NCBI GenBank assembly: GCA_965240325.2
Contig: OZ251235.1
Location: 930,001-994,000, forward strand
Reading direction: 5' to 3'
DNA: 64,000 nucleotides
Source of the DNA: Rebecca billardiae RCC1528
Taxonomy: Eukaryota; Protista; Haptophyta
The translations under genes were made by a program, and so were the position numbers. Shown one piece after another: positions 6,298-61,231 of the stretch (positions are counted from its first letter, which is position 1; each line of letters starts with the position of its first letter). The notes under the pieces were generated by a model, which was given only the letters and a program-made list of their open reading frames with translations, had not been told where the DNA came from and did no database searches.

Positions 6298-6350
6298 ATC
6301 TCGCCTGCCTGAGCTGTGTGCGTCTCTTATTCTTAGTAATATAAACTGTA
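6298..6350 (-). repeat. Short one-ended element, family X, copy 1
   Basis: Reverse complement of TACAGTTTA(TATTA)CTAAGAATAAGAGACGCACACAGCTCAGGCAGGCGAGAT; also at 14408-14465 and 22463-22520. Confidence 0.9.
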
Positions 6351-6487
6351 TGTAGAGTTCTGACAAGTCCGACGAAGATCAATCGTCAATAAAAACAATT
6401 GCTGCGCGCCTACGACTGCGCTCAATATTGCTAATCAAACGGCGGCATCACGTCATTCGTCCGAGGCCGCCTGGTAGCACACAGCGG

Positions 6488-8650
6488 TCAATAGTTGAGC
6501 ATCATGAGGTTTTGCCGCCCGGGCGCGGAGGGCGAGGGCGAGAGATGCATCGAAGCTGGCTGCGACGAGCGCGACGGCGACGACACGCCGCCGGCCGCGA
6601 GCGGACCCTGGCAGCGTCCCTGCGCCCCCGGTCGCGCCGCTGCGCTCATCGACCCGCCGCTCGCCGCCGCCTCAGCACCCCCAGCCGCCGCGCGGCCGCC
6701 AGGCGCGGCGCTCCGCTGGCTCACGGCGCGCTCGACGCGCGCGGTCATCGCCTCGAGCGCCGCCAGCTCGCGCTCGACCGTGCGCTGCAGCGCCTCCGCC
6801 TCGGCGCGCGCCACCTCCTCTGCGGCCGACGGCCCCGGCTTGGGCTTCTCAAGCGCCAGGGCGTGCAGCTCGGCGCGCGCCGCGTCCAGCTCCTGCTGCA
6901 GCGCGCCAGCGCGCGCGGTGGCGGCCTCCGCCTCGGCGTGCGCGCCCTGGAGCTGCGCGCTCAGCTGCGAGACCGTCGCCGCCTCGGCCGCCGCCGCGCT
7001 CGAGATGGCTGCGCGCGTGGAGGCGGGCGCGCGCGGCAGGCGGCAGCGGGGCGGCGCGCCACTCGAGTGAGCGGTGCAATGAGTGCGCGCGCGCGCGTGC
7101 GCGGGGCGCGGGGCGGCGCGCCCGCGCGCACCTGCGCTCGCCCGCCCGACCTCCTGCCCCATGGCCAGCGCGTGCTGCGCCAGCCGCGCGTCCGAGTGCA
7201 GCGCGCCCCAGCGCCGCGCCTTGAGCCCGCCCAGCTGCAGCGCGCCCTCTGAGCCGCCGACCGCGGCAAAAAGACGCAGCAGGGCGGAGGACGACGCCCC
7301 GTCTTCGCGCGCGCCGCCTCCCGCAGCGGCGAGCAGCGCGCCGCCGCCATCGCGCGCGCTGAGCAGCGCGCCGAGCAGCTCGAGCTCCGCCGACGCGTCG
7401 TCGACGCGCGCCTGCCGCTCGCGCTCGAGCGTCGCCGTCAGCTTGCCCGCGTGCTCGCGCGCGAACGCGAGGTGCGCACGCGCGTCTGCAAGGTCGTCGC
7501 GTAGCCGGCGCGCCTCGTCCTCCGCGCGCGCGCGCGGCGTGTGCGCGCGGCCGTGCAGGCCGAGGACGAGCGCGCTGCTCTCGTCGGCTGACGGCGGGTA
7601 CGCCGCGACCGCCGCCGAGGTGCGCCAGCCGCTGAACGCGCGCGCCAACCCGATCAGCTGCGCAGAGTGCGCCGCGTGCACGAGCCGTCGTCCGCGCTCG
7701 GCCAGCGTCCGCTCGCGAGCGAGCGCGCGCGCCTGCTGCGCCTCCGCGGTGAGGACGGAGACGGTGCGCGCGAGGTAGGTCTCGGCGCCGTCCGCGCGCG
7801 CCCCCGAGCCGCCGTGCGCGGCGCTGATCCCCGCCTCCCCGCCGAACCCGCCCCCCTCCTCCTCCTCGCCAGCAGCGTAGGCGCCATCCAGCGTCTCAGA
7901 AAGGGGCAAAGAGCGTGGCCGGCGCGCGGACGCGGCCGGCCACGCGCCCGCGGAGGAGGGGCGCGTGGCGTTCGACGCCGCGGAGGAGGGCACGCCCGCG
8001 TGGGGCGGCGCGCAGGCCGTGCGCGGCGTGCGCAGGGGCGGATGAGCCCCAGCCGACGGCGCGGCGGCGCCGGGCCGCGCCGGCCGCGCGCGCGTCGGCG
8101 TCTGCCGCAGCGCGCGCGGTGGCGCGTGCGTGCGCGCGGCGGCGGCAGCGGCGGCGCCGGCCAGGCCCGCCGGCCTGGCATCGGACAGCGAGACCGTCAG
8201 CGCGTAGCGGCACGTCTCGCGCACGTGGTAGTTGTAGTTGGTCACGCCGATGTACCACGTGCCGGGTGTGAGCAGCCCTGAGTTGGTATCGACGGCGATG
8301 TGGTGGTCGGCGGCGTTGGCGTTGAAGGCCTCCTGGTCCCAGAAGTCGGCGATGATGCGCGAGCGCCGAGGCACGTGCGGCGGGGCGCCGTGCCGCAGCA
8401 TGAGCAGCGGGTCGCCCGACCCCTTGTGCAGGTGCACGACGACCTGGTGCACCGAGCTCGCAATCTCGATGTGGAAGAAGTGGGTGGCGCCGTGCAGGAT
8501 GGCGCCCGAACGAACCTCGCCGGGGTGGATCAGCTGGCTTTGCACCTCACCACGCGTCGGCGAGCCACCGTCGGCGGTTGGCGACAACCCGCCGTCCGCC
8601 TCCATGCCCTTCTGCCGCACGGCCGGCAAGCTCATGAAGCTCGCCGCCAT
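6488..8650 (-). CDS. Protein with an N-terminal PPC-like beta-sandwich and a C-terminal coiled coil; contains in-frame GC-rich intron(s)
   Basis: HFFHIEI..GDPLLMLRHGAPP..PGTWYIGV..CRYALTVS motif; Ala/Glu/Arg heptad region; probable intron ~7130-7010. Confidence 0.6.
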   Translation of the reverse strand: MAASFMSLPAVRQKGMEADGGLSPTADGGSPTRGEVQSQLIHPGEVRSGAILHGATHFFHIEIASSVHQVVVHLHKGSGDPLLMLRHGAPPHVPRRSRIIADFWDQEAFNANAADHHIAVDTNSGLLTPGTWYIGVTNYNYHVRETCRYALTVSLSDARPAGLAGAAAAAAARTHAPPRALRQTPTRARPARPGAAAPSAGAHPPLRTPRTACAPPHAGVPSSAASNATRPSSAGAWPAASARRPRSLPLSETLDGAYAAGEEEEGGGFGGEAGISAAHGGSGARADGAETYLARTVSVLTAEAQQARALARERTLAERGRRLVHAAHSAQLIGLARAFSGWRTSAAVAAYPPSADESSALVLGLHGRAHTPRARAEDEARRLRDDLADARAHLAFAREHAGKLTATLERERQARVDDASAELELLGALLSARDGGGALLAAAGGGAREDGASSSALLRLFAAVGGSEGALQLGGLKARRWGALHSDARLAQHALAMGQEVGRASAGARGRAAPRPAHARARTHCTAHSSGAPPRCRLPRAPASTRAAISSAAAAEAATVSQLSAQLQGAHAEAEAATARAGALQQELDAARAELHALALEKPKPGPSAAEEVARAEAEALQRTVERELAALEAMTARVERAVSQRSAAPGGRAAAGGAEAAASGGSMSAAARPGAQGRCQGPLAAGGVSSPSRSSQPASMHLSPSPSAPGRQNLMMLNY

Positions 8651-8882
8651 TGCGATTCGCCTCGGCCGCTGTCAAGTTCGAACCCAGCACCAGCAAAAGG
8701 CCAAAAAGCCCAAAACACTGAAAACAGCCTTGTATGTGTTCAGAAAGTCCGGTAGACCGAGTCCGGGGCTGGTTTCCGCAGGAACTGGTTGGTCGAGCTG
8801 CAAGAGTTCGACCGTTGGCGGGTTGGCGCAGCCGCGGCGGCGGCATCGTCGACTTGAAGAACACGCATCGGGCTGCGGACAG

Positions 8883-10563: not shown

Positions 10564-10777
<214 letters not shown>

Positions 10778-11235
10778 TATCACGACTCAATCACTGACAT
10801 ATGTACACTGTGACTGTGAGTGTGATGAGTATTGATGAGTGATACTGATAGTGATGGCGCATCGATCAGACTACTTATGATTCGATCATCAGTCTTAATA
10901 TTGGCTAATGTAACTGCCTCTGCCAACTCGGTCGGGCGAGACTCGGAACTGGCCGCTGAACGGACAGACGGCAATAGTAAACGGTCTTATATTCTTAATA
11001 ATAACATTAAGTAGCATGACGACGACGCCTCACGCCATCATCTAGCTAAGCTGATGAAGACCTGCCACGGCGCGTCAGGCCGTCACGAGCCTGGCACGGC
11101 TGGCAGTGGCACCTCGATCAGAGTCGAATCAGGCCTGTGCTATGAGCCATAGCCGACGATAGCGGCTGAGCATAGCGGCGCAGGCAGACAAGACGGCAGG
11201 CCTTGCGGCGTCAACTCGGCCGCGAGCCGCGAGGC

Positions 11236-12465
11236 TCATGCCCCGGGCGCGTGCTCGCGCAGCTTGGCACACAGCGCCTCCGCCTCCGACGTGCCCTTGA
11301 GCAGAAAGGAGTACTTGGCCGGCTTGCCGTCTGCGTTCTTCAGCGCGTTCACCAGGATCACCTGCAGCCGCTTGCCGACAACCTCCGGCTTGAGCGACGG
11401 CGTGAGCCGCGCGGAGAGCACCGGCCGGCCGAGGCGAGTGGCGCCCTCCGCGTCGGACTGCGGCTCGTTGTCCGCCGTCGACTCGGACACCTCGGGCCGG
11501 AACTCGACGAAGGTCACCGCGTCGTCCTTCATCAGCCGCACGCGCCCGATGCCGACGGCCTTCCACTCCATCACCGCCTTGGAGTGCTCGTCCACGCCCT
11601 TGCGGAACACGGACATCTTGGCGCGCAGCGAGAGCAGCGCGCTGGAGTCGGCGCCGTCGGCATCGCCCACGGCGGGCGCGGGCGCAGCCGGCTTGGCCGC
11701 CGCGGACGCAAACGCTGGCCCAGGCTGCAGGCCGCCACCGCCACCGCCACCGCCACCGCCACCGCCAAAGCTGAGCGTGCCACCGCCGCCGCCGCCGCCG
11801 CCCGAATTCGCGCCAAAGCTGAAGAGCGGGACCGAGCCCGCTGCCCCCGCGGTAGATGACGACGGCATGCGTGCCTGCAGAGCACGCCTGTGATCGAGGT
11901 AGTCCTTCGCCGCCGCCTCCCAGTCACCCTCGGGGCATCGCTGCCACTCGGCACGCAGGAATGCGGCAAAATTGGTGTTGAGCTCGCGAGAGAGGGTGCT
12001 GAAGTCGGCGGCACTGAGCGGCGTGGAGCCCTTCAGCAGAGCACGGAGGCGTGACGTCTCCGTAGCGTCACCGTCGCCGCCTCCGCCGGAGCGCGGCGGC
12101 TGCGCCGTGGGGCCGCCAAACACGGGCGCCGCCGCCTGTCCGCCAAACGGGTTGGACGTGGGTGCGGGCGCGGAAGCACCGAAGGGCGTCCCGCTCAGCA
12201 CACCCGCGGGGGCACCTCCAAGCGCGCCACCACCCGCGCTCGGCGCCGCGAGCTGAATCGAGGCGAACGGGTTGGCGGCCTTTGCCGGCCCGTCGCCACC
12301 TTTGCCGCCGGCAGGCCGCTTGAACGACCTGATTTTGCGCTCGGCCAGGGTGGCGTCGTCGGCCTTGGCGAATCCGCCGAAGGTCGGCGTGTCAGCGCCC
12401 CCATCCTCCTCCTCCTCGTCTTGGTTCAGCTGCGTGAGCTGCTTGTCCGCGCCCCGCTTGCTCAT
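11236..12465 (-). CDS. NUP50: NUP50/Nup2-like nucleoporin
   Basis: N-terminal MSKRGADKQLTQLN..FAKADDATLAERKI; FG repeats (PFG, FSFG, LSFG); LNTNF..W..DYLDH middle motif; C-terminal RanBD/PH fold (WKAVGIGRVRL). Confidence 0.85.
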   Translation of the reverse strand: MSKRGADKQLTQLNQDEEEEDGGADTPTFGGFAKADDATLAERKIRSFKRPAGGKGGDGPAKAANPFASIQLAAPSAGGGALGGAPAGVLSGTPFGASAPAPTSNPFGGQAAAPVFGGPTAQPPRSGGGGDGDATETSRLRALLKGSTPLSAADFSTLSRELNTNFAAFLRAEWQRCPEGDWEAAAKDYLDHRRALQARMPSSSTAGAAGSVPLFSFGANSGGGGGGGGTLSFGGGGGGGGGGGGLQPGPAFASAAAKPAAPAPAVGDADGADSSALLSLRAKMSVFRKGVDEHSKAVMEWKAVGIGRVRLMKDDAVTFVEFRPEVSESTADNEPQSDAEGATRLGRPVLSARLTPSLKPEVVGKRLQVILVNALKNADGKPAKYSFLLKGTSEAEALCAKLREHAPGA

Positions 12466-12624
12466 CGGCGCGCGCGACGCCCTCGCGCGTGTGTCGTCGT
12501 CGCGGAAGCCCTGAGTCGCTGACGCGCGCTGGCTCACGCGTCCGGGTGGCCACAGTGGCAGTGCCGGAGTGTCCCACCGCGCGGCGCACCCAGGACCGAG
12601 CTGGGCGGGCAAGGCAAGGGCACG

Positions 12625-13749
12625 ATGGAAGTGGCCGCCGTCGTTCGACGTGGGTGGGCCATGGTGTTGTTCGCGGCGACACTGGTGACGATGGGATGCC
12701 TCGCTGGGCTCCATGGTGTGCCTCACACGTCCACATCCACCGCTGGGTCGAGCGAGCTCGCGGCGGACGCGGCAGCAAGCGCATCGAACAACACCCTGGG
12801 CAAGGGCGACATGCCACCGGGCGTGTACGCGTGCGTGGGCACTGTGGGCAGCGACAGCGCCTGGCGCGCGGGCCAGGGCGGCTGCTCGGCACCGAGCTCG
12901 GACTGGGACCGCACGCAGCGCCGATATCTGCTCGTCGTGCCTCCACGGCCTCAACGTCCGGCACCACTCGTGCTGCTCGCGCCAGGGTCGGATTGCGATC
13001 CATCGTGGGAGCTCGAGATCACCGAGCTGACGCCGCTCGCGGCCAAGCATGGCTTTGCAGCCGTCGTGCTGCAGGGCGAAGAGGACAGCCTGAACGTCGC
13101 CAAGGAAGCCATGCCAGGCGACGGCGCTGACGATGTCGCGTTCACGCTCGCCGCCGCGCGGCATGCGCACACGCTCCTGCCCGGAGGCGTCGATCCGCGC
13201 AGAGTCTTCTGCACAGGCCACTCGCGCGGCGCGCGCTTCTGCTCGATGCTCGGCGCGCGCCTGCCCGCCCTGGTCGCAGCCATTGCGCCGCACTCCGGCC
13301 TGCGCTTCCCGCTCGCGCCCCATGGCACGCGCCCGGTGCCCGTGCTCGCCTTCCACGGCCTGGCTGACACGGTCAACCCGTTCTACGGCGGCGGGGCGGA
13401 GTACTGGAACACGAGCGTGCCGGACGCGGTGCAGAGGTGGGCGGCGTTCAATCGGTGCAACGGGACGGCCACGACGCGCCTCGATCACGGCGTCTCGCTC
13501 GAGGTGCACAGCGGGTGCCTGGACGGCGCAGATGTGCAGCTGTACACTTCGGACGGCGCTGGGCACACCTGGTTTGGCCAGCCGTGGAAGTACATGTTCA
13601 CCTGCAGCGTGGGGCGCATAGTTAGCCACCCGAAGGCATCGCCTCTGCTCTGGCGCTTCTTCGAGGAGCACCCGCTCCCACTCGAGTACGCCCCCGAGGC
13701 GTCGGCGCTCCTGAACGGCCCCGAGACCCTTCCAGTTCCAGTAGGATGA
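12625..13749 (+). CDS. Secreted LpqC/PHB-depolymerase-family (CE1-like) esterase
   Basis: Signal/anchor; DDVAF, VDPRRVFCTGHSRG nucleophile motif, PVPVLAFHGLADTVNP, GAGHTW. Confidence 0.85.
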   Translation: MEVAAVVRRGWAMVLFAATLVTMGCLAGLHGVPHTSTSTAGSSELAADAAASASNNTLGKGDMPPGVYACVGTVGSDSAWRAGQGGCSAPSSDWDRTQRRYLLVVPPRPQRPAPLVLLAPGSDCDPSWELEITELTPLAAKHGFAAVVLQGEEDSLNVAKEAMPGDGADDVAFTLAAARHAHTLLPGGVDPRRVFCTGHSRGARFCSMLGARLPALVAAIAPHSGLRFPLAPHGTRPVPVLAFHGLADTVNPFYGGGAEYWNTSVPDAVQRWAAFNRCNGTATTRLDHGVSLEVHSGCLDGADVQLYTSDGAGHTWFGQPWKYMFTCSVGRIVSHPKASPLLWRFFEEHPLPLEYAPEASALLNGPETLPVPVG

Positions 13750-14016
13750 CAAGTGAGTCTTTTACGGCCACCATTCGCGGACTCGCCGGCAGTGAGAGGC
13801 TGCTGTGCGCGCCACCAACTACGACTACTACGACGGACGATGAAATCGCGCCGCGGCGGCATCATATCATCGACGATCATTCATCAACGGGCCGCCGCTG
13901 CGCTGCCGTGCGTCGTAGCCAGTACTAGCCTACTCTGACTAAAGCTGTAGGCTTCGTATATTATTATTATTATTATAAACTCTCGACTATTTCAATAATC
14001 ATCGTCCCCTTTTTAA

Positions 14017-14050
14017 TATATATATGTGCATATATATATATATATATATT
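14017..14050. repeat. (TA)n microsatellite
   Basis: Directly visible. Confidence 0.85.
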
Positions 14051-14407
14051 ATAATAATAACGGGCTCCGGGTGATCATGCAGACAATCCGGCGGCCGAAG
14101 CCTCCAGCCCTACCCTCGGGCTACCCTGGCCAGCCCCCAACCAACCGCACCACCCCCGCACCCGCATTACCCAACCTCCGTTGAACGGTAAAGCGCCAGC
14201 GGTAAGTATTTAAGTATATTAAACCGCACCCGGACCGAGACACTGCTTATTCGGCCCTGCCGCCCCGGCACCACTCCGACTGCGGACAGCCCGCCCGTCC
14301 AGAGTCCAGAGGCAGAGGCAGAGGGGCGGGGGTATGCCATTGCCAACAGCATAGTAGTACATGATACATAGTTTAAAATACTAAGGGGTTAATTAAGCCA
14401 CTTTAAA

Positions 14408-14465
14408 GCGGGCGTCAATCTCGCCTGCCTGAGCTGTGTGCGTCTCTTATTCTTAGTAAACTGTA
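14408..14465 (-). repeat. Short one-ended element, family X, copy 2 (ends 8 bp before the esterase ATG)
   Basis: 58 bp identical (reverse complement) to 22463-22520. Confidence 0.9.
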
Positions 14466-15454: not shown

Positions 15455-16774
15455 TTCAGGATTCTGATGTACTGATGGTCAGTGACACTGCTGATAGTGA
15501 CAGTATACATATTAGTTAAGCGTCCAACCGGTATACAACATATAAGAAGCTTGCGAGCTCTACAGGTATCTTATTGCTTCATTGTCACCGTCTTCACATC
15601 AATCACATCTGATTCTGGGCTTCTGGCTACAGGCTCAGTACAGGCTAGCGTCGCCGCTCGCGGTTGCCAGCCCGGCGCGGCTCGGGCCCAGCCCGCCCGT
15701 TTGTAGTCGTCGTCATCAGACTAGATTTAAAGACATCACATGCACGAGGGCGCAGCTCTCCTGATTCGTCTGTCGTGGTACTGGTCGAAGCTTGCACTCA
15801 GTGGCAGTGCTGGTGTTACTCTGAGCACGTTGATGTTGGTCGCCACTGGGGTGGATGTTGTTGTCCGTTGTCGTCGTCGACGTAGTCGGTCAGGCCCGCC
15901 AGGAAGTGCAGCATGGGAGTACCACTGAATCAAAGGCGGGTGAGCATGTTGGTCGGTCGGCAAGGGCGTCCCCTACTCTCTACTTCAGGGTACAGTCGAG
16001 TTCGCCCGCCAGTGTAAGCTAACTAGAGTCTATTAAGCAGCGTACGTACACTCGCTCTGTCACTCACACAGCAGCGGAATAATAACATTATAATAATATT
16101 ATTAAAGACTAATTTAGTAGTCAATTTTTGAACGGTAGTTACCGAAAAGCGGAATCCTCTCCGAAGTCTTACGGTAACGGTTACGCCTTACGGTAACGTC
16201 GGTAACCGATTACCGGAGTAGCAGCTACCGATTCGAGTACCGATGTAGCTTAGTAACGTCGTAGTATACTTCGACGATATACTACGTGTATTAATAAACA
16301 GGCTCACTGCGAGTGGCTCAGCAGGCACCGTAGCTAATCCGTATCATATTCCGCCACTCAGATCGAATTGATTATTGAATACTCGACGGTACAGTCCCGC
16401 GCCGGAAGTCTGATCCATCACATCATCCGATTATATTGTTTCAACAGTCAGCCGATCGAGTGGCACTTATGGCTAGCCGATCCGCGCGGCCCGGCGGGCG
16501 GCCGGACGTCCTGTGCCACTGCCTGCTGCCCGTGCAGGCACCGCCCGTGGTGCCACAGTTTACTCGGGCGGGTCTCATGCCGTCTGGGCGCCGCCGGTCA
16601 CGGCGGGGCGGCGAGCGGCGCCCATCGACCGCGTGATCAGACATCGCCACTCCGATGAGGGCGTAGTCGGACTGCACATGGCAATGCCGTGCACACAGCC
16701 GTGACCAGGGCTGAATGCAGTTGTCAGAAGGCCGTGATCGAGGCTTCTGCTCCAGGCTTGATGCACGCTCATTG

Positions 16775-17293: not shown

Positions 17294-17337
17294 TACAGTT
17301 TACAATGTTTTAACGTGCACACTTGGTTAAGGCGTGA
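17294..17337 (+). repeat. Short one-ended element, family Y, copy 1
   Basis: tacagtttacaatgttttaacgtgcacacttggttaaggcgtga; 2 mismatches to 22612-22655. Confidence 0.9.
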
Positions 17338-17929
17338 TTAGGGGAGAGAGGGCGTATTATAGTCGGATTCTCTCCCCCATGTCGGTTCGCGCCTAGCTTT
17401 GACACTCGCGATGATGAACAGATGTTGCCTGCGTCGTCATATGACACCATTATCCCGTTATTTACCGTTACGCGCTGCGGAGGTGTCCGGTCGTTGTCAT
17501 TATAGGTTCATCGTTGTTTGCGTACTACTGTTAAATACTTGACGGTTCTACTTAACCGTAAACCTATAGTTTTATGTTTAAGCATGCCGAAATCATTCAT
17601 CGAATGAACGATTTGGCGTCCCAAATACCAGAATCTAGTCTGAGTGACTTATGGAGTAACATGCGGCGAAGTTACGGTGAGTACTTCACCCACAAGGCAC
17701 GATGAACCATACTCATAGATGACCGCAGCGGTATTTATCTCGGCCTTACCTCGCATATTGTCTTTGCACACGAGCCTGAAATTACCGCGCTTGGACTCTT
17801 TGGAGTGCATTAGTAATCAGAGTTAACGACGCACACCCTCATCACAAACATCAAACATCTAGCATCCACAGCCCAAGGTCACGGCGACTCCTCCCTCCCA
17901 GGGCGTTGGGGGTTGGTCGGCGCGAGAAG

Positions 17930-20900
17930 ATGCTGCGGCGACACGCGCCGGCGCGCGAACTCGTCCTCATAACAGACCCGGGCCCCGATCCGGATGACGT
18001 CAAGGCGCTCCTGATCGCGGGCACGCTGCACAAGCGCGGCGACATTCAGCTGCGCCTCGTCGTCGCAAACGGTGGCCACCAGGCGCGCGAGCGCGCGAGG
18101 CTCGCGCAGTGCCTGCTCGACGCGATCGGTGTTCGCAGTGTGCCGGTGGCAATCGGGAGCGAGGGCCAGACGGCGTACGAGCCCGTCGCGCACGAGTACC
18201 TGCTCAAGGGCTACGACGCGGTCGATGATGCACGCCTCGAGCCCGACGGGCGCGCGAGCTTGCTTCGGGTGCTCGATGTGGCCGCCAGCAAATCGCTGGT
18301 GATCGTGTGCATCTCGTCGCTGCGCGACCTCGCGGACGTGATTGGGGCGCAGCCCGCGCTTGTCCTGGACAGGGTCGCGCGCGTCGCGGTCCAGGCCGGC
18401 CTCGACTTCGACGAGGCTTCCTCGCGTTGGGTGCCGGACACGTCCGTCAACAACGGCTTCGACCCGGACGCTGCCGCGGCCGTGTACGACTTCTGCTTCG
18501 GGAATGGGCTGCCGCTGACGGTGGTGTCACGGCACGCGGTCCCGCTGCTGCCGATGCAGCTCGCGCGCTCGTTCGCCGAGCGCACCGCCTCGCCCGTCAT
18601 GGCCTACCTCGCCAACGCGCAGTTCCTCGGCCTCCGCGGCCTCTGGCGCAAGCTGTGCGACGGCAAGCTGCCCGCGCGCTGCACCAAGCAGTGGTACTTC
18701 GAGACGTTCTGCGGCGTGGACGCGGCGCGCTTTGCTGCGCAGGGCTTCGAGACGCTCGACGCCACCGCGGACATCCTCCCGCACCTCAACGGCTACGTCA
18801 AGCCGTACGACGTGTGCGCGCTGATGGCCGTGCTGCCGCACAAGCCGGGAGAGGCGTTCGACGCGTGCGCGGTCGCGCCGCCGCGGCTCGCGCCCGGGCA
18901 GCCCGCGGCGGCGCACCGGCTGCACCTCGCTGCTGAGCACGGGATCGACGTGACGCACGTGACGCGGCTCCTCCGCCACGTGTACCACGACATCGTCCTC
19001 GCCACCGTCCCACCGTCAACGGTCAACCCGCGGCTGGGATTCGTGCGCCGCTCGGACCGCTCCGAGCTGCTCCACTCGGCCGAAGACCCGAGCCTGCTGC
19101 AGTGCGTGGACGAGCAGGAGCGGCTCAAGTCGTGGAAGGAGCCGCGACGCGCGGCCTCGGAGAACCCGGGCGCCACGAGTGCCGCGGGGCATGCCCTGCT
19201 CGACGCGCCGCAGATCATCGAGCTCTTCCACCGCAGCCTCGAGCTGACGGGCGCGCAGCTGCAGCACTCGTCGCGCGTCGCGGCGTGTATGGGCATCCTC
19301 TTCTTCATGGGCGCGGCGGCGACGGTGTTCTGGGCGTTCGACACGGAGCCGCCGCCGGGCGCGGGCCGCGCGCACTTCGCGACGCGCAAGCTTGTCGGCG
19401 AAGCCGCCTTCGACATCGCCGACCTCGCCATCGCGGTCGGCGTGCTCGCCCTCCAGCCGGTCGCGTCGCACCGGCGCGCGACGACCGCGACCGCTGCCGC
19501 GATCGTCGCCGCGTCGCTCCTCTTCGCCGTGCCGGCCGTGCCGCAGGCGGCGGAGGCGCTGCGCACGTGGGAGGACGACGACGCGGTGCGGCCGGCTCCC
19601 CGCGCCTGCGACGAGGTGAGCAGCCCCGCCGCATGGCGCCTCGCCCACGGCGTGTGGCTCGCGCAGTCGGTGCTTGCTTACTTTTGCTTCGATCTGTGGC
19701 TCGCGCGCGTCTGGCTCATGACGCGGCGGCACCCGAGCGGCTGGGCGCAGACTGTGCGCGTGCGCGCGCTCTGGTCGGCGTGCATGGTCAACCTCGCGCT
19801 GCAGTCGTGCACGCGCGCGCTGCTCTCGAGCACGCGCTGCGCGAACGCCGTCCTGCTGAACGCCGAGCCCGCCCCGGCCTTCCTGCTCCCTGCTCTCCTC
19901 AGCATGCACGGCGCGGCGGTGCTGCTGTACGCCGCGCTGCTTGCGCCGGGTGGGCGGCTGCGCGCCAAGGCGCTCCTGATGCGGCTGGGCCGCGGCCGGC
20001 CGTCGGCGCGCCGGGTGCACGCGGAGGCGCCGCTCGCGCCGCTGATTGGCTACGGCTCGCTCGTCGCGCTCGAGCCGTCCCGCCTCGTGCCCGAGGCGCT
20101 CCGTGGCATGCGCGCCGCCACACTCGGGCCGCGCACGGTGCGCGCGCTCACGCTCGATGCAGGTGAGCAGTCGACGCCGCAGGCAGGCCGCCGCGGGCGC
20201 GCGGGAGCGGGCGCGGGCGGCGCGGCCTCTTCGCCCGGCGTCACGGGCGGCAAGCTGGGCTCTCCGCACCCGCGCGCCGCGCTCGCCCAGCTCTGCCACC
20301 GCAGCAGCAGCGCCGTCGCGCCGATCTCGAGCGAGCACAGCATCTGTGCGGACGCGCCGAGTGCAAAGGGGGGCAGCGGCAGCGGCGCCGCCCCGGGCCC
20401 GGAGCCGAGCGGCCGCCGCGGCAGCTCAGCCACCCAGAGCAGCCGCAGCAGCTGCAGCCTCTGCTCGAGCAGCCGCAGCAGCAAGCCTTCGAGCCTCAGC
20501 GGCGGCAGCGCCGTGAGCCACAGCGCCGGCGGCAGCACTACCGCCACCACCACGGCCACGACCACTGTCACTGCGATCAGCCCCAGCGGCCGCGCCAAGC
20601 CCGAGGCTAGCCCGAGCAGCCTCGGCGGCAGCAGCGCCCTCTGGATGGGCCGGAGCAGCAGCCGCGGCAGCCCGCTCGGCCCGCCGCCGCTCAGCCGCCC
20701 AGGCAACTCGTCCTTCCTCTCTGACGCGAGCACGCCGCGCTCCGCAGACGGCGGCAGCTCAGTGCGCACGCGCTTCCGGCAGAGGCTGAGCCGGCGCAGC
20801 GTGCGTGCGCCGCCCAGGCGGAGCTCCAGCGAGCAGCTCTCGACCACCATCGTCGACATCGATCACGACCGCGCGCTCACTCCCGATTCTTTCGACGTCT

Positions 20901-21479
20901 TCGTGCTCCACTCCGAACGCGACCCGCCCGCCGAGCGTCTGATCGCGCTGAGCGCGTGGGCGCGCGAGTTCCGCGCCGCGCGCGGGCGCTGGCCGCGCGT
21001 GTGGCTCGACTCGCTCTGCGCCGACCCGATCGTCGACCGACGCGAGCGGCTCGCTCACGAGGTCGTGGCCATGTGCCGCGCGCGCACGCTGCTCTGCCTG
21101 GTGGGCGCCAGCTTCGTCGCGCGCCTCGCGTGCATCGGCCGGCTGCTCGCGTGGCGCGCGACGGGCGGCTCACTCGATGACGTCGAGGTCGTGCTGGTCG
21201 GCGCCGACGCCGCCGAGTTCAGCGCGATCGTCGCGGCGGTCGACGCGTTCCACGTCGTGTACGCCGAGCACACCGCGCGGCCGCGCGCGAGCAGCGCGGA
21301 CGACCAGGGCCCTCTCGTCCACGCCATCGAGCTCGCTGGCGCGCGGCGCGTGAATGAGCTCGTGCACAGCCTGCTGCCGCAAGTGCAGCGCGCGGTGCCC
21401 AAGGCGCTGCAGCGCGCGCGCCCGGCGTGGGCGCTCGGCCGCGCGTGGGTGGCGGGCCTCGGCGAGCCCAGCTCCGACA

Positions 21480-21514
<35 letters not shown>

Positions 21515-21790
21515 CCGTTGGGAGCGGACGGTTCTGGTGACAAGCGGTCGCGTCGTCGGTCCTCGTCGTCGCCGACCAAGCAACAGCCGGCCTCCGAGAT
21601 CCACGCACTCCACCAGCCGCTCCAGCTGTCGCGCCGCGTGGGCACACAGCCGCAGCTGCCAGAAGACGAGCCGACATCATCAAGTGCTCGCTGCAGCGGC
21701 GTGTCCCACTGCAGCCTGAGCGCGGCTGCGCTCGATCACAACGGGCACGGCGCACGTGAAACTTCGCCGTTCCCAGCAACTGCAATCTGA
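17930..21790 (+). CDS. Nucleoside-hydrolase-like domain + multi-pass transmembrane region + Ser-rich linker + TIR-like domain
   Basis: LVLITDPGPDPDD..VVAN..VPVAIG..CISSLRD..NNGFDPDAA..YDVCA (IU-NH fold); ~6 hydrophobic helices; FDVFVLHS..RVWLDSLC..LLCLVGASFVARLAC (TIR-like). Confidence 0.8.
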
Positions 21791-22203
21791 TGCGCTGACG
21801 ATTTCGCTTCGCGGCGGCGGCTGCGAGTGCGAGTCGGCAGCGCCGGCCGCCGCGCGCCAAACGCGCAGCCGCACCGGGAAATGAGCTCGCCGAATGGCGG
21901 TGTTGAGTGTACTAACTACATGCTGACGTGTCGCCTGCAGTGCCGTGCAGGCGGCATCGGGCTGATCAGCTGCTCAGTCGGAGTAGCGGCGAAATAAACG
22001 GCTGCCGCCGCTGGTAGTGCAGGTAGTGGTGAGTACTGAACGTAGCCGACGCGGCCGCGGGGCCCCCGGCCGGCCCGCCCGGGATCAGTCATCATAGTTT
22101 CTGCTGATGCGAGAACTGGACGACAGGTCGGAATGACGACTACGATGGATACAGTCGGAATAATGACGACGATGGGTTTCGGATTGCTCTGGGGACTGTA
22201 CTA

Positions 22204-22461
22204 GCTGAGACTGCCAGCTGACATCCGGACCTGCACCTTCGCCCTTGCTCGGGGCACAGCAGGTCCGCATGCGAGCTGACCGCGCAGCGGCAGGTGGATC
22301 GCGCTTCAGCAGCTCAGTCAAGGCCGCGCTCAAGCTTTACGATCGCGGTGCAGGCTATGCTCTGCCACCAGCGCCGACTTCGTGTCGACGATCGGGCACT
22401 GCCGCCGACGAATCAGGAGACCCGCGTCGTCCTACCTGTGTCGTTAAATCATAGAATGAGT
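22204..22461 (-). mobile_element. One-ended element, family Z (~260 bp), copy 1
   Basis: Reverse-complement near-identical to 47393-47650; terminal motif ACTCATTCTATGATTTAACGACAC at 22461-22438. Confidence 0.9.
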
Positions 22462-47392: not shown

Positions 47393-47650
47393 ACTCATTC
47401 TATGATTTAACGACACAGGTAGGACGACGCGGGTCTCCTGATTCGTCGGCGGCAGTGCCCGATCGTCGACACGAAGTCGGCGTTGGTGGCAGAGCATAGC
47501 CTGCACCGCGATCGTAAAGCTTGAGCGCGGCCTTGAGCTGCTGAAGCGCGATCCACCTGCGCTGCGCGGCTCGCATGGACCGCTGCTGTGCCCCGAGCAA
47601 GGGCGAAAGTGCAGGTCCGGATGTCAGCTGGCAGTCTCAGCCGCGGGTAG
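47393..47650 (+). mobile_element. One-ended element, family Z (~260 bp), copy 2
   Basis: Begins with ACTCATTCTATGATTTAACGACAC; homologous to 22204-22461; agact at both ends. Confidence 0.9.
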
Positions 47651-48197
47651 ACTACTCCGTACTCGGCAGCTGTCTGAACTCTTGATCAGAGTCCGTGAGG
47701 GATGCACGGGTTTAGCTCACCCGGTCACCTCTACATACTAATACTTCTAGCGCACGGACTCAGTCTTGCCATGCAGTCCGTGCGCAGTATCTATACCGTC
47801 AGCAAGTCTTCTGAGGTCTTAATGATTAAGGCCACTAGTGTAACTGAATTTATCCACTCCGGGTCTGAAATCTGATGTCCGATGTCGGATGTATGCGGCG
47901 GGGCGGCCTCACACGGTCCGTAACTGTCCCAGAGTCACAGTCGGCCCGAGCGGCGTCGCAGTGTCCGAGTCGGTCCAAGCGACTCTGGTTGATGCGCCCT
48001 GTGCCGGTGCCATCGCCCATCGGGCCATTCATCCGCGCGGAATCATGCACGGTGGATCACAGCCTCACCCTCGGTTTGTCTCACGAGTGTCACGGTGTAA
48101 TCGAGTGTGCGTGCGTCACTCTGTGCCTCCATCCCGCCGGCACTCGAAGCAGAGTGCTCAGCGGCTTCGAGCGGCCTCGTCGTCCTTGATACGGATG

Positions 48198-48806
48198 TTA
48201 TCCCGCCGGTGTGCGAGAGGCCCTTGCGAACGGGCTGCGCGCTGGGCTCGGTGGCGCGAGCGTCGAAGCGAATCCTGGGCGGTCGAGCTTGGCTGACTTC
48301 TTCTCCGGAGGCACGACCGGCAACAGGCCGAGCGAATGCCGGTGAGGCCGCTTGGGTGAGCCGTCGTCCTGGCCGGTGTGCTTCTTGCCGCGCTTCGGCG
48401 AGGTCGCGCCGCGAACCGCCAGCCCCTCCGCGGTGCTGATGAGCTGCCGCGCGTCCTGCGAGATGGACATCGAGCGCTTGGCCGCGATCTGCTGCTCCGC
48501 CGTTTGGATGAGACGACGCGCGTCGGGACTGGCCTCGCCGTCGAGCGGGGCGGCGCCCACGCGTGGCGTGGATGATGCGCGACGCATCACGTGCACCATC
48601 TCCGCCTGGTGCAGGGACGTCGCCTCCTCGCCCCAGCACGAGTTGCACAATTTGCGGCGCATGATCTCTCCGCCGCCGATATCGACGCGCTGCACGACGT
48701 GGCAGGTGCTGCACACGCGGCGGCTGCACACGCCACACGTGCGCAGGTGCCAGCGGTTGTGCTCGCACTCGCCACAGCGCTCACGATGCGGGAGCCCAAA
48801 ACCCAT
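48198..48806 (-). CDS. FYVE-like 8-Cys zinc-finger protein, tandem paralog A
   Basis: CGEC..CGVC..CSTC..CNSC followed by a Ser/Pro/Arg-rich tail. Confidence 0.75.
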   Translation of the reverse strand: MGFGLPHRERCGECEHNRWHLRTCGVCSRRVCSTCHVVQRVDIGGGEIMRRKLCNSCWGEEATSLHQAEMVHVMRRASSTPRVGAAPLDGEASPDARRLIQTAEQQIAAKRSMSISQDARQLISTAEGLAVRGATSPKRGKKHTGQDDGSPKRPHRHSLGLLPVVPPEKKSAKLDRPGFASTLAPPSPARSPFARASRTPAG

Positions 48807-49316
48807 GCTCGCGTGCGGTCCGACTCCCGAGCTATCTCCGCCGCACACGGCCAGCGATTGCGAATCTCCGCCCCCCTTCGCTCGGTGAGTCGGGGTGCGC
48901 ACCGGGGTGCAAAGCGCACCCGTGTGACGGATCCGGGAGAGGGTGCGGTGGGTGAAGCCTCCTAGTCTAGGACAGTCGACATAGATTCTGAGATTCCCCC
49001 TCTATGTCTTTGATGGCGCCAGCGCACACATATATTCAAACGCCTCACTTTGATTCATCTCCAGTATTTCTTCATAAGGCTTGGCGACCGTTGAGAGGCG
49101 TTGGGTTTGTGGTGGCGGTCTGGCAGCGCCTGGCGGACACGTTCCCCAACGGCAAAGGGCTAAAATAAGAGCGCCTACCCCCATACCCTCATACATGCCA
49201 CATATCTGATCTAGTCAGAACGCGGCCTCAAAGTATGAAGGCTGAGAAGACAGTGAGAGCACCATCGGTGTCAGTAGCAAAGCGTCCGTCAGTAGTTGCT
49301 AGCGATGCGCGCGACG

Positions 49317-49940
49317 TTATCCCGGCGGCGTGCGAGAGATCCTCGCGAACGGGCTGCGCGCTGGGCTCGGCGGCGCCAGCGTAGCAGCGTGGGGCAGGCC
49401 GAGCGCGCGGCCGCGCATACCGGCTGCGTTCTTCTCCGGCGGCGCGACCGGCAACGACAGGCCGAGTGCCGGCCTTTGCGGACGCGGGGGCGAGCTGTCG
49501 TCCGGGCCAGTGAGATACCCGTCACGCGTCGGCGAGTCCGCGCCCACGCCCGACAACCCCTCCGCGTTGCTGATGAGCTGCCGCGCGTCCTGCGAGATGG
49601 ACATCTGCCGCTTCACCTCCACCTTCTCCTCCGCCTTGTGGATGAGACGCCGCGCGTCGAAACTGCTGTCGACGTCGAGTCGGGTGGGGGTTCCTTGTGG
49701 CTCAGATGACGCGCGACGAATCACGTGCCTCACTTCCGCCAGGTGCAGGGACGTCGCCTCCTCGCCCCAGCACGAGTTGCACAATTTGCGGCGCACGATC
49801 TCTCCGCCGCCTAGCTCGGCACGCTGCACGACGTGGCAGGTGCTGCACACGCGGCGAGTGCACTTGCCACATGTGCGCAGGTGCCAGCGGCTGTGCTCGC
49901 ACTCGCCACAGCGCTCACGATGCGGAAGCGCAAACCCCAT
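49317..49940 (-). CDS. FYVE-like 8-Cys zinc-finger protein, tandem paralog B
   Basis: Colinear with paralog A (MGF.LPHRERCGECEH..SMSISQDARQLIS..TLAPPSPARSPFAR). Confidence 0.75.
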   Translation of the reverse strand: MGFALPHRERCGECEHSRWHLRTCGKCTRRVCSTCHVVQRAELGGGEIVRRKLCNSCWGEEATSLHLAEVRHVIRRASSEPQGTPTRLDVDSSFDARRLIHKAEEKVEVKRQMSISQDARQLISNAEGLSGVGADSPTRDGYLTGPDDSSPPRPQRPALGLSLPVAPPEKNAAGMRGRALGLPHAATLAPPSPARSPFARISRTPPG

Positions 49941-51145
49941 GCTCGACGGTGTTGCGAGTCGGGGACGGCAGAGAGGAAGTTGCTTGCGGAGCTTTTCGGC
50001 ACTGGCGTCGTGGTTCGCGGGCTCGGCAAAGGAATGCCGTTGCCGAGTGGGCGAAACTTTCCAGCGGTCGGAGCTACAGTGCTTACGCGGGCGGTTCGGC
50101 GCGGGAAACGAGACTACGTTCCCCCGTGTCGGACCAAGGACCGGACACGCGATCCAATCGACCAATCCGAGCGTGCGTCTGAGCGGTTCATAAGTGGTGG
50201 GCGAAACAGCTTATAAGTACTCATTCCAACTGCTCTACCAACCACAGGTCCGACGCCCAATCAGAGCTCCCCACGGAGCGCTTAAGAATCCCCAACAGGG
50301 GCCGTAAGCACTACTGGACCGGCGCGCTCACCGGCGGCACGGCGCGCGAACATTCCGAAGGCGTACCGATGGAAACCGTCTACGAACATTCTTCGCTCGA
50401 GCTCAACGTCTGGGTATGCCGTTACACAGTGAGAAGCAAGTGATTATGATAGAGGTGTGTGCGTCTGCTCAGTAAACTGTAACGGACCCGACGGAGGCCG
50501 CTCCCGCGCTTCCAGCGTATTGTGGCTCTCGGCCTTCCGCCGCTCCAGTAGAGCTCCCGATGGGGCCCAGCGGGGCGGTAGCGAGGCGGGGAACGACTGG
50601 AGCTTGCGCGTGGTTGTGTGTTTTGCGCCCCCGCACCTCTGGAGGTCTGCGAGGCCCGCGCGAGCTTGAGCTTGCGGCGGTTCACATCTGATAAATTACC
50701 TGCATCGACAGCCGTTCAAGGTCCACCGGCACGTTGCCTGCATTCGAGGCGCATGAAGCCGCAGGGCGTCATGGCGCGCGTCCACGACCTTGCTGCAAGA
50801 TGGCTTAGACTCTCCCGGGATGCGCGCCTCGGGTTGCGCTCAGCGCGCGCACACTTTGCTGGGACGACAGCACAACTAAGCGGTGAGTCAGCCGGCATAG
50901 GCAGTCAGGGGCGCTATGCATATGTCCGGGTGGGCCGTCAAGGCGCAGAGAATATGAGCAGACGCCAGTAGCCTCGCGACACAAGACGGCGCAGACACAC
51001 GCTGCCCCTCTGCCCAACCGCGTGCACCATCACCGCGTGCACGTCGACGACCGCGGCGGCCGCAGCGCGCGGCGGCACCCGCGCACGGCAGCGCCGCGCG
51101 GCGCGCCGCATGTGTGGCGGCGGCCCGATGTTACGCAGGCAGAAG

Positions 51146-51560
51146 GATGAATGAATAATCAAAATGAATCAGTGGCAGAGCTGCAGCGGATCGATCAGCA
51201 GGGACGAACACCAGGATCAGCGCTCCTCGCAGTCGTCCCTCACCTCGCCGTCGCCCCGCGGCATCACTCCATCGCCGAGCATCGCCATCGGTCAGCCGTC
51301 GTCTCGAAGTGATAATCGTCGCGTGCCGCGCCCCCGAGAGCGCGTGCCCCTGGGCACACCTGAGCCATGCGCGCGGCCGATGAGCATCTTGGCCTGGCCA
51401 CGCAGGCAGCACACGCCCAGCTCGCGCCGCATGGCGCCAGTGGTGAGCGCAAGCTGGTTGTGCGCGCAGCACGGCAACCAGGGGAGGCGGGTGCCGCAGG
51501 CTGCGGCGAGGCGCGCGCAAATCTGCATCGTCATCAAAAGCAAGCAAACAGGAGAACGGG
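51146..51560 (-). mobile_element. Possible 3' relic of a non-LTR retrotransposon (CRE/RLE-type)
   Basis: RRELGVCCLRGQAKML resembles the RLE C-terminal R-LSV...RGNA helix; downstream TTCA-rich tail. Confidence 0.3.
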
Positions 51561-51619
51561 TATCGCCTGCGGGCACTGCTCACCGACATCGGCGGCGTCG
51601 CCGCGGCTGGCGCGGCGCG

Positions 51620-57696: not shown

Positions 57697-59347
57697 CGGC
57701 GCACCGTGCGTCACGGTCTGGCGGCAAAGGATCAAGACGCGTGCTGCGGCTGCGCCGGGGCGAGGCGGCGAGCGAGGCCGCGCGAGTGAGGGACGCCAAA
57801 CGCAGCCGCCCGACTGAACCCAATCTATGATTTATCATAACCACACAGGTTCCACTGGGGACAAGGCACCCAGGGTCGGAGAAAATCGGCGCGCTTTTTA
57901 TTTCCGCCTTGCATTTATTCAGCCGCGCGCTGCGCGGCGGACGCGCGCGTCTCGGGCGAGCGGGCGACGGCGCCGCGCTCCCGTGCGTGTGGACGATCCC
58001 GCGAGCGCAGAGCCGGCGAGCTAGGCTGGGCAGTCGTGCTGAAGTGCCATTCGCCGCTTCGCGCCGCGCATCGCATTCGGCTGTACTTGCCTCGGGCCAG
58101 CACTTGTCTGTGCACACCGCCACACGGCCAGCCCGTCGCCCGCGTGCGCCATGCGAGGCGAGACACACACGGAGCATGCGCTTCCGCGCGGCGAGGCCTA
58201 CGCTGTACGCACTGCGCTACCTTGCGCCGCCGCGCATGAGCGCGGGTCCGAACAGCTGCGTTCAGGTGTGCTGATTGCATCATTCATACGAGCCGATTGG
58301 TCGAACAAGCGCTCTGGCCCGACGATGACGTTGCAGCGCACGCCATGCTGATATGCGGTGACGCGGAGCATGTGCGCTCGCGCGGAGTGGCCACACGCGT
58401 GACCGCTGTCCAGCTCTGCCCCGGCATTGAACTCCCTGACTCGTGCTCCGACGTCAATCTTGGCCCGAGCTAGTACGTGCATGTATGCGTGCTGATGCAG
58501 AATATACCTGAACGAGGCCCATGATGGCCTGCCTGCGTGTATGTGCCTCCTCGGATGACACGGCGCGTGTATGAATGTGTGTATACTACCTTGTCAAGCA
58601 GTAGCTCACGTCTGGACGTTCGTGTCGAACTTGACGGTGCGCATCGTGCACACACGGTCAGCCTTGATAGACGCACCCGTGCAGCCGGAAGGCAGCATCA
58701 GCCTGCCTAAGACGTGAGCATCCAGCCCCGACGCCGCTTCCGGTGCCTGAATGGCGCGCGCTCCTTTCACGCGGGAATGTGCTCACTACATCACTATCCA
58801 GAAGGGCGCATGTCCGTGCTTTGCATGCTCACATGACCCTCGCCGTAGGTCGATGCCAACCGCTGCGTGATGCTCGATCATGCCTTTTGACGGCTGTGTG
58901 ACCCGTGCAGATGCGTATGCCAGGCAGCGTACTGTGGCGAGCGATGACGCGTGCATAAACTACCTGGACATTGCCCAGTGCAACCAAGTGCCGGACGCCG
59001 ACGCCGCTGCTCGCGGCACGCGTGCAGTCAGCCGAGGAATGCACACAACTTCCTTGTTGGTGCGGCGCACGCGATGGCCTGAGGCGCGGCGGATGCAGTG
59101 ATTCCGAACGGCGAGCGGTGGAACGACGCAAATGGCTGCTCTTCAGCCGCGCTCAACCACGCGCACCGCCTTCGCGGGCACGCAACTACCGCAGGAGGGC
59201 GCGCAGTCGGCGCCCATCTCGCCCCTCCAGCGCCGCCCAGCGCGCTGTCAAGCGCAGCCGCCAGCGGCAGAGGTTGGTGGTGCTCTGACGGCATCACCAA
59301 CATATTCGGAAAAGAAAATCCCCACCCGAAATTCCTGCGCCCAGTGG

Positions 59348-59391
59348 CAGGTAGGACGACGCGGGTCTGTCTGATTCGTCGGCGGCGGTGC
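59348..59391 (+). repeat. Internal fragment of family Z (segment adjacent to the terminal motif)
   Basis: caggtaggacgacgcgggtctgtctgattcgtcggcggcggtgc matches 47416-47458. Confidence 0.8.
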
Positions 59392-59432
59392 TCCACCCAC
59401 CCGTTCAGGCGCCCGCTGTCGGGTCGGATCTG

Positions 59433-60841
59433 GGGGTGGCCCGCGGCTCGCGGAAAACATTTCAGTTGAAATGGCTTATTGGCTTCCGGCTGCGCGCCGG
59501 TAAAGTGGCCCTGCCAGTGGCGTGCGCGGCCTCGCCTCGCGTGCGCGCCAGTGAAGACGAAGGCTGGGCGACGGCGCGCGAGGCGGGTACGTCTGGTCGC
59601 ACCTACTGACCCCTTCTGACGCTCATGGCTCGCCTCCGTAGCCTCTTCTGCGCCCATGGTCACTGCGTACGTCCATGCGTCTGCATGCCGTTGCGGCTGG
59701 CGGTGCTTGCGCCGTCGCTTCATCGCACCGGATGTGCTGCAAGGGCAAGACGCGGGCTTCCTGAAGAGAGAACATATATGCCAGCCCCATGCGCACCGGT
59801 TCAAGCCACGACTCAAGCGCATGTCGCGGACAGAAGCGGGCGCGGTAGGCAACGTTTGGCCTTCTCGGTCGGTGGCAGTCGAGTAGTGCTCAGAAGCGGA
59901 GAAGAGGCTGAGGCGGCACACTTCTGCAGAGCCGGATGTCCCTTGAGCAGTTCTTCAAATGATGGCCGCGATGCGCCGTCGCCACGGCCATGCCAGCCGC
60001 CGCAGACGACACGCGCGACGGGCGGCGCGACGGGTCTTGGCGCTCATCTCGCAGTGGCGCGCACTGCGCGCCACTGTGTCCGGGCGGAATTATGCGTACC
60101 GGGTACGCATAATTCCGCCCCGGACTCATTCTATGATTTAACGACACAGGACGTGTGAATTAGGTCGGGTCGCCTGAACGGGTGGCGTTCAGGCGACCCG
60201 ACCTAACTCACACGAGTCCGGGGCGGAGTGCGATGAGCGCCAAGCCCTGGCGCGGCGCCCGCCGCGCGCGCTCGTCTGCGGCGACTGACACGGCCGTGGC
60301 GACGGCGCATCGCGACCATCCTTTGAAGAACTGCTCAAGGGACATCCGGCTCTGCAGAAATGTGCCGCCTCAGCCTCTTCTCGGCTTGTGAGCACCACTC
60401 GACTGCCACCAGCCGAGAAGGCCAATCGTTGCCTCCCGCGTCCGCTTCTGTCCGCGACATGCGCTTGAGTCGTGGCTTGAACCGGTGCGCATGGGGCTGG
60501 CATGTATGTTCTCTCCTCAGGAAGCCCGCGTCTTGCCCTTGCAGCACATCCGGTGCGATGAAGCGACGGCGCAGGCACTGCCAGCCGCAAGCATGCAGAC
60601 GCATGGACTTACGCAGTGACCATGGGCGCAGAAGAGGCCGCGGAGGCGAGACATGAGCGTCAGAAGGGGTCAGTAGGTGCGACCAGACCTACCCATCTCG
60701 CGCGCCGTCACCCAGCCTTCGTCTTCATTGGCGCGCACGCGAGGCGAGGCCGCGCACGCCACCCGGCACGGCCACTTTACCGGCGCGCGGCCGGAAGCCA
60801 TTTCAATTGAAATGTTTTCCGCGAGCGCCGCGGGTTGCCCC
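59433..60841. repeat. ~1.4-kb imperfect palindrome: arms ~59433-60127 and ~60214-60841, with three hairpins and a family Z motif at the centre
   Basis: Arms align by eye throughout as reverse complements; hairpins at 60052-60076, 60082-60120 and 60152-60214; motif at 60124-60147. Confidence 0.92.
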
Positions 60842-61193
60842 TGGCAAGATATTGCCTCCCGATGGCCAGAATATCGTATTTGATATTCGCTAGCCTCTCA
60901 GTGCAGATATTATTGCCTAATATTGATCGAATATCGCTGCGCCGCACGGCCCGGCGCGCGGCCGCGCGCGCGGCGCGGCCCGCGACCGTGTGATTACTCA
61001 TCGTCGTCTCACTCGTCATCACTTCCGACGTACCGCGGTACCGTCCGAAGTCTACAGACGGACTGGGTGGGCACTGGACACTTGGGAAGTCGTCTTTGAC
61101 CAGTCACACTGTCAGGCATGCTCAGAGCTCTGAGCATGATTCTGCGCGGGTTTTGACGCTGTTTCCTTATTCGAAGGAAACTTGAAACTGTAG

Positions 61194-61231
61194 TACAGTT
61201 TACTATGTGATTTCACGTGCACACTTGGTTA
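61194..61231 (+). repeat. Short one-ended element, family Y, copy 3 (diverged)
   Basis: tacagtttactatgtgatttcacgtgcacacttggtta. Confidence 0.85.

Follow-up and report, generated by a model that had tools for sequence, protein, structure and literature searches.

Short repeats with one conserved terminus near genes of a haptophyte-like alga

A 64-kb stretch of the Rebecca billardiae RCC1528 assembly (contig OZ251235.1, positions 930,001 to 994,000; hereafter, the window) carries short dispersed repeats of three types, X, Y, and Z, that have a single conserved terminus in common. Judged by their sequences, X, Y, and Z are subfamilies or variants of one interspersed, noncoding family with a common terminal block. 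We tentatively read them as terminus-bearing fragments of a mobile-DNA family that were inserted one-ended, by end joining, near promoters, and we assign this reading a probability of roughly 40%. A first-pass annotation of the same DNA had proposed ten copies, and all ten were confirmed where it had placed them.

The shared terminus and its copies

In alignment, X, Y, and Z are homologous over ∼31 nucleotides (nt), which comprise a tip of 7 to 9 nt followed by CTATGATTTAACG, or a variant thereof, and by CACAC; beyond this block, the bodies diverge. The tip reads TA-CAGTTTAC in X and Y and ACTCATTC in Z (within the block layout, TACAGTTTA for X and Y and ACTCATT for Z), and the alignment reveals no conservation upstream of it. 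The earlier claim that the three types have motifs in common holds for this homologous block, but among the Y copies, only that at 22612 carries CTATGATTTAACG unaltered; the other two depart from it by 2 to 3 bases. TA precedes the CAGTTT tip in 8/8 cases and the Z tip in 2/4, in a window in which GC content is 66.2% and TA accounts for 2.1% of dinucleotides. In a dinucleotide-preserving shuffle control, a 12-mer was observed 6 times versus 0.00 in the shuffles and a 13-mer 5 times versus 0.04.

X copies are located at 6298 to 6350 (−), 14408 to 14465 (−), and 22463 to 22520 (+). The last two are 100% identical across 58 nt, and the first, with its head at 6350 and a 5-nt insertion in its tip, has 42 nt in common with the other X copies at 100% identity. 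Relative to genes, the copy at 6298 to 6350 points toward the ATG at 6253 from 97 nt upstream; the copy at 14408 to 14465 points away from the ATG at 14474 (+), with its head at a distance of 8 nt. A diverged X-like copy, absent from the earlier list, was found at 50455 to 50481 (−). Y copies occur at 17294 to 17337 (+), 22612 to 22655 (+), and 61194 to 61231 (+); the first two are 95% identical across 44 nt, and the third is ∼90% identical to both. The copy at 17294 lies 636 nt from the ATG at 17930 (+) and 163 nt from the ATG (∼17131) of a small open reading frame (ORF) on the opposite strand, and the copy at 22612 lies 148 nt upstream of the ATG at 22760, which belongs to an ATG16/WD40 gene. 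That small ORF (16780 to 17131, −, ∼117 amino acids) falls outside the long-ORF list and shows, by eye, a coding-type GC periodicity.

The Z type includes two long copies (Z-long), at 22204 to 22461 (−; head at 22461) and 47393 to 47650 (+); the segment from 47393 to 47641 is the reverse complement of 22204 to 22461 at 94% identity over ∼260 nt. The head of the second Z-long copy lies 116 nt upstream of the ATG of a dynamin-like gene (47277, −) and points away from it. Two further Z copies are heads alone and have only 27 to 30 nt in common: one of ∼30 nt at 34560 to 34588 (+), in an AT-rich spacer between two convergent genes, and one of 27 nt at 60124 to 60150 (+). Diverged relatives of these copies include a Z-like copy at 57817 to 57849 (+), located 121 nt upstream of a methyltransferase ATG (57696, −) and pointing away from it; a copy of the shared block (TTAACG..GCACAC) at 17800 to 17836 (+), ∼100 nt upstream of the ATG at 17930; and a degenerate Z-like copy at 15724 to 15770 (+) with 79% identity to 47414 to 47447. 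Pieces of the Z body also occur headless and newly combined. At 59348 to 59391 (+), the 44-nt module found behind the Z head at 47416 appears again, here without a head and followed by half of the hairpin at 60160 to 60206, and the distal 110 nt of Z-long stand without a head at 43470 to 43581 (+).

In general, identity among the copies is 93 to 100%, with diverged older copies alongside. Unrelated loci that match at 100% over 58 nt or at 94% over 260 nt require copying, and the diverged older members show that it took place repeatedly over time.

All copies extend inward from an exact terminus, for 24 to ∼260 nt, and stop at a different place at each locus. Pairwise similarity gives only the length of the shorter copy, such that matches of 58/58 and 44/44 positions are no proof of a fixed inner end. 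The earlier description of one sharp and one variable end is accurate as to the exact terminus and the differing inner ends, but Z-long, alone among the types, has a true distal boundary, where three copies terminate no more than 9 nt apart. The same annotation had attached the Z motif to three bodies, two of them starting with a hairpin. Such a hairpin is strong at 60152 to 60214 (z = −10.2), but the fold of the body at 34560 is not significant (z = −1.1).

The Z head at 60124 to 60150 sits between the second and third of three strong hairpins (60052 to 60076, 60082 to 60120, and 60160 to 60206) at the center of a 1.4-kb palindrome (59440 to 60834), the arms of which are ∼92% identical. ORFs in the palindrome arms are Arg rich and look noncoding, so the surrounding region (57.7 to 62.7 kb) may be gene poor. 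We also observed that the block shared by Y and Z contains a minimal ORF (ATG, one codon, TAA) at 17303 to 17315, 22621 to 22633, 34567 to 34579, 47400 to 47412, and 60131 to 60143; in the variant Y copy, it reads ATG-TTT-TAA. GT directly follows the Z head in three of the four copies (CAG/GTAGGA twice and CTG/GTACCC).

At two places, heads abut. A Z head ends at 22461 and an X head starts at 22463, the two facing apart with a single base in between (GAG-TA-TA-CAG). At the second place, an inverted 8-nt copy of the X/Y tip (61185 to 61192, −) ends one base before the Y head at 61194, which gives a snap-back-like junction. When 12 heads were placed at random in the 23.4 kb of nongenic DNA, at least one abutting pair arose in 0.55% of trials and two pairs in 0.0005%; the inverted tip was spotted through its position, and 0.55% is the safer figure.

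A second end was sought in several ways. A 31-position profile (nhmmer, E values up to 50) found no inverted partner in the window, in agreement with the claim that a partner terminal inverted repeat (TIR) is missing. The profile returned eleven clear copies at E values of 9e-8 to 0.011, followed by four weak partial matches (E = 19 to 36), including one (E = 32) that overlaps the 57817 diverged copy. A search of the window with 14-mers at ≤3 mismatches likewise retrieved no inverted partner, and no target-site duplication flanks any unit. On the copies, no tail of the poly(A) or microsatellite type was seen, as had been reported, and a tRNA-like part was detected in the window neither by ARAGORN (0 genes) nor by Rfam (0 matches at the gathering score). 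With no inverted partner, duplication, tail, or tRNA-like part, the layout is indeed unlike that of a classical miniature inverted-repeat transposable element (MITE) or short interspersed nuclear element. No hammerhead ribozyme was found when the entire window was scanned with Rfam at E values of ≤1; the only matches were generic hairpins (microRNA models) elsewhere in the window. As single strands, X, Y, and Z fold no better than shuffled sequences (z = −0.8 to +1.1). Among the window ORFs scanned with Pfam, none contains a Rep (HUH), reverse transcriptase (RT), GIY-YIG, or tyrosine-recombinase domain, the domains that the first-pass annotation had proposed to look for, and none contains a helicase or DDE domain. 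We favor viewing the copies as substrates that are defined by a single end, a proposal of the first-pass annotation that we retain.

All heads are nongenic, and 7/12 lie within 300 nt upstream of a predicted ATG, versus 21% of nongenic DNA. With clusters counted once and the copy at 57817 added, ∼6/10 independent loci lie within this distance by our own count. The orientation of the heads to the nearest ATG is mixed, with distances of 97, 148, 297, and 541 nt for heads pointing toward the ATG and 8, 116, 121, 163, and 299 nt for those pointing away.

Beyond the window, motif scans gave 0 matches in viral contigs, and the Y/Z pattern gave 0 in a metagenome scan. A looser X/Y pattern retrieved, among the metagenome matches listed, only chance ones in AT-rich contigs, none of which extended into the CACAC block. 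The three matches from a prokaryotic genome scan were all chance, and a literature search for the motif strings returned unrelated primers only. Neither 21.7 kb of Pavlovales sp. CCMP2436 nor a 2.3-kb contig from a closer relative contained a copy; this is a small sample from distant relatives.

Proposed one-ended insertion and rival explanations

In the reading that we favor, the terminus would be made by a sequence-specific enzyme that binds the shared block, and cleavage beside this block would produce an exact DNA end. The free end would then be joined to broken chromosomal DNA at accessible, promoter-proximal sites and, at least once, to another such end. Joining would be the work of host end-joining repair and not of a concerted, two-ended transposase reaction. 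End joining would explain the missing partner end, the lack of target-site duplications, and the head-to-head junction, as well as the 8-nt snap-back copy, the headless body pieces, and the mosaic of bodies. Head-to-head joins, snap-backs, fragments, and a lack of duplications are the outcomes of end joining of linear DNA, as at transferred DNA (T-DNA) and captured-DNA junctions. Because the copies are young and partnerless and two-ended elements persist nearby, their one-endedness would reflect the mode of insertion and not decay.

T-DNA and captured linear DNA offer a mechanistic analogue, with one exact and one ragged end, inverted head-to-head junctions, short snap-back filler, and no target duplication. 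No transfer system or relaxase is known for the present copies, and the likeness is one of outcome and not of family. Bacterial repetitive extragenic palindromic (REP) sequences and bacterial interspersed mosaic elements are similarly short, intergenic, mosaic modules that occur in variants, sometimes as inverted pairs, and lack duplications; the units described here differ in belonging to a eukaryote, in not forming hairpins, and in having no known RAYT-like gene. By analogy, the TA-CAGT tip looks like a Tc1/mariner-type end, and the one-ended anatomy looks like that of HUH elements or of T-DNA with one protected end.

Several points weigh against one-ended insertion by end joining. The end-joining step is deduced from two junctions, units of 27 to 58 nt are unusual for mobile DNA, and the window holds no enzyme candidate among the scanned ORFs. 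Comparison of folding with shuffles revealed no hairpins for recognition by an HUH enzyme. No extra copies turned up in any collection searched, and the census rests on 64 kb. Moreover, the promoter-proximal bias would fit a functional cis-element as well, and a diverged copy keeps sub-blocks at a near-equal distance from its ATG (116 versus 121 nt), as a cis-element would.

Those last two points lead to the strongest rival, which we nevertheless consider rather unlikely: that X, Y, and Z are a promoter-proximal cis-element, either of the host or exapted from a transposon, with the shared block bound by a transcription factor or acting as a core-promoter sequence. The enrichment of heads within 300 nt upstream of an ATG (7/12 against 21% expected) is consistent with this explanation. 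So are the two Z-type copies found in the same orientation 116 and 121 nt upstream of unrelated genes, the old, diverged one of which keeps CTATGATTTA and ACACAGGT, and the further diverged copy ∼100 nt upstream of the ATG at 17930. The reverse strand also contains a TATA-like TTAAAT, and the X, Y, and Z tips presumably fit an initiator-like consensus. However, recent copying, and not selection, is needed to explain why unrelated loci are 100% identical over 58 nt or 94% identical over 260 nt. Orientation to the nearest ATG is mixed, and the distances, at 8 to 541 nt, are not fixed; by our own reading, copies accompany only ∼7 of ∼26 genes, and one copy lies between convergent genes. No conservation is found upstream of the sharp end. 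Motifs fixed at orthologous positions in relatives, which had been named as a sign of host regulation, were not found, the 21.7 kb of Pavlovales sp. CCMP2436 (a small sample) holding no copy.

Decay of Tc1/mariner-type elements or MITEs, in which the heads would be solo TIRs left after deletion of the remainder, we regard as unlikely. Copies resemble Tc1/mariner elements and Stowaway-like MITEs in having TA outside a CAGT-type tip, a ∼30-nt conserved block of the size of a binding site, and subfamilies with a common terminal block and differing interiors, and TA-flanked TIR elements do exist in the same window. CAGT is the usual Tc1 tip, and TA before 8/8 CAGTTT tips compares with a TA dinucleotide frequency of 2.1%. 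Unlike these elements, the copies lack a second inverted end, at which the other TA would stand, the Z tips are TA flanked in 2/4 cases only, and copies are as short as 27 nt. Ordinary Tc1 ends, with TA and a distant inverted copy, had been the other outcome envisaged at the start; of this pair of features, the TA before all CAGTTT tips was observed and the distant partner was not. No partner accompanies any of the eleven clear copies (0/11), though the copies are young, the other TIR elements in the window are intact, and a single TIR is not mobilizable by a cut-and-paste transposase, yet the copies are near identical. Since two-ended TIR elements survive intact here, decay is not the general fate of elements in this DNA, and it is only the TA-CAGT tip that favors this explanation.

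An HUH or rolling-circle element (Helitron, Helitron2, or Replitron like), copied from its conserved end to a variable stop, appears quite improbable. Like Helitrons and Helitron2 elements, the copies lack a TIR pair and a target duplication, have one conserved and one variable end, and possess mosaic bodies; in addition, Z-long has a defined far end. Three +/− pairs of heads join an X/Y-type with a Z-type end (17294..22461, 47393..50481, and 60124..61192), and Helitron2 elements have asymmetric inverted repeats (PMC5148889). Two of these pairs, however, enclose ordinary host genes, namely, a nucleoside-hydrolase-like protein gene in 17294..22461 and two Cys-rich paralogues in 47393..50481; the pairs lack flanking duplications, and we treat them as putative. 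The tips read TACAG and ACTCA and the opposite-strand ends ..CTGTA and ..TGAGT, and so the copies lack the 5′ TC and the 3′ CTRR of Helitrons, as they lack a terminal or subterminal hairpin, the units folding like shuffles. No Rep, helicase, or RepHel ORF is present among the ORFs scanned, and ends abutting head to head are unlike the products of rolling-circle copying. The explanation has no positive mark, with only negative features (no TIR and no duplication) to recommend it, and the Helitron/HUH label proposed in the first-pass annotation is not supported.

The other label proposed there, Penelope, fares no better. That the copies are extremely 5′-truncated 3′ ends of a Penelope-like or other non-long-terminal-repeat retroelement, read on the opposite strand, is highly improbable. 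One conserved end with variable length would be expected of such an element, and some Penelope-like and other families of this kind lack poly(A) tails. Against it stand the lack of a hammerhead ribozyme at E values of ≤1, of an RT or GIY-YIG domain in the scanned ORFs, and of a target duplication or tail, and the headless pieces, which keep the opposite end.

Further candidates were tried and rejected. Intron 3′ ends and 5′ untranslated exons conflict with the mixed orientation to genes, and polyadenylation sites fit Z but fail for X and Y. For organelle-derived inserts, Z-long is too GC rich. As for sequencing adapters, the only resemblance is one of 9 nt to the Tn5 mosaic end. Relic spliced leaders were set aside on the grounds that the 58 nt of X stay identical in front of three unrelated genes; we know of no trans-splicing in haptophytes. 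A rule placing X and Y at 5′ ends and Z at 3′ ends would draw on three independent loci only and is trivial in divergent spacers.

Finally, a stronger version of one-ended mobility can be formulated, to which we give little credence: a eukaryotic micro-element system mobilized via a single recognized end, the tip of which would be set by a nicking enzyme encoded elsewhere, with copies of 27 to 260 nt then placed near promoters and neither a second end nor a target duplication involved. Such a system would, by analogy and with equally little credence, be a counterpart of bacterial REP/RAYT or of left-end-only Helitron copying.

Two-ended elements and genes of the window

Three classical two-ended TIR families are intact in the window, two of them clearly TA flanked. 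The largest element (3058 to 5591, 2.5 kb), the ends of which bear no relation to X, Y, and Z, is flanked by TA on either side. Its TIRs are perfect over 30 nt, and it carries subterminal arrays of an A/T-rich 13-nt repeat. One ORF within it (4525 to 5505, −) gives weak HTH_23, HTH_29, and HTH_Tnp_1 matches and has no recognizable catalytic domain, and it retrieved no homologues in a word search and no informative PDB match. This element is probably a degenerate Tc1/mariner/IS630-like transposon. A MITE of 609 bp and 67% GC (30667 to 31275), located between a lipase and an ankyrin gene, has perfect TIRs of 24 to 26 nt and TA on both sides. The third family is a pair of MITEs (694 to 1202 and 28346 to 28819) of ∼500 bp that are 86% identical, mutually inverted, and bounded by inverted ends of 27 to 29 nt. 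Around the second member, a ∼22-nt direct repeat (28313 to 28335 and 28870 to 28892) lies beside a (GTAC)6 run (28857 to 28880).

The window represents nuclear DNA, and its source is a haptophyte-like alga with a compact, GC-rich genome. Its ORFs are closely spaced and mostly uninterrupted, with GC content at third codon positions above 0.8; the genome of Diacronema lutheri has a GC content of 73% (PMC8379373), versus the 66.2% found here, so the source is a different, though similar, alga. Pfam identified a triose-phosphate transporter (12 to 518), NUP50 (11236 to 13752, −), the ATG16/WD40 gene (22760 to 24481), ferrochelatase (from 38965 on), and gelsolin repeats (51164 to 54604). Further genes named by Pfam encode a dynamin-like GTPase, a methyltransferase, an RRM protein, ankyrin repeats, a galactosyltransferase, and a GDSL lipase. 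In a word search, the top named relatives of the ferrochelatase are haptophytes, led by Pavlovales sp. CCMP2436 (67%) and followed by Scyphosphaera, Calcidiscus, and Prymnesium, with identities of ≤75% among the haptophyte relatives. The ferrochelatase exons and the transporter gene have 76 to 80% DNA identity with one Pavlovales sp. CCMP2436 locus (L001). An exact look-up of the gelsolin ORF in the protein collection gave no match, and a word search with the ATG16/WD40 protein, its results swamped by WD40 repeats, found no close relative.

The ferrochelatase gene (39188 to 40714) contains at least two introns, and its exons (39188 to 40018, 40218 to 40395, and 40535 to 40714) align to the Pavlovales sp. 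CCMP2436 gene, a comparison made at the DNA level only. Gene starts in the window are ORF-based predictions, and because ferrochelatase has introns, ORF-based gene ends elsewhere may be incomplete. Two tandem paralogues (48198 to 48806 and 49317 to 49940, both −) of ∼205 amino acids have 81% DNA identity and a Cys-rich, zinc-finger-like N terminus and match no Pfam family. AT-rich spacers contain long (TA)n microsatellites (10669 to 10790, 14001 to 14060, and 61670 to 61720), one with a (CA)n core; two of the three lie 350 to 470 nt from an X or Y copy.

Significance

In the genomes of haptophytes and other protists, repeats are for the most part unclassified. If mobility via a single end is true, X, Y, and Z would represent a mode of transposition not described in this form in eukaryotes. 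If they are instead an exapted promoter module, they would give a first handle on the promoter architecture of Pavlovales-like algae, which are used for lipid research.

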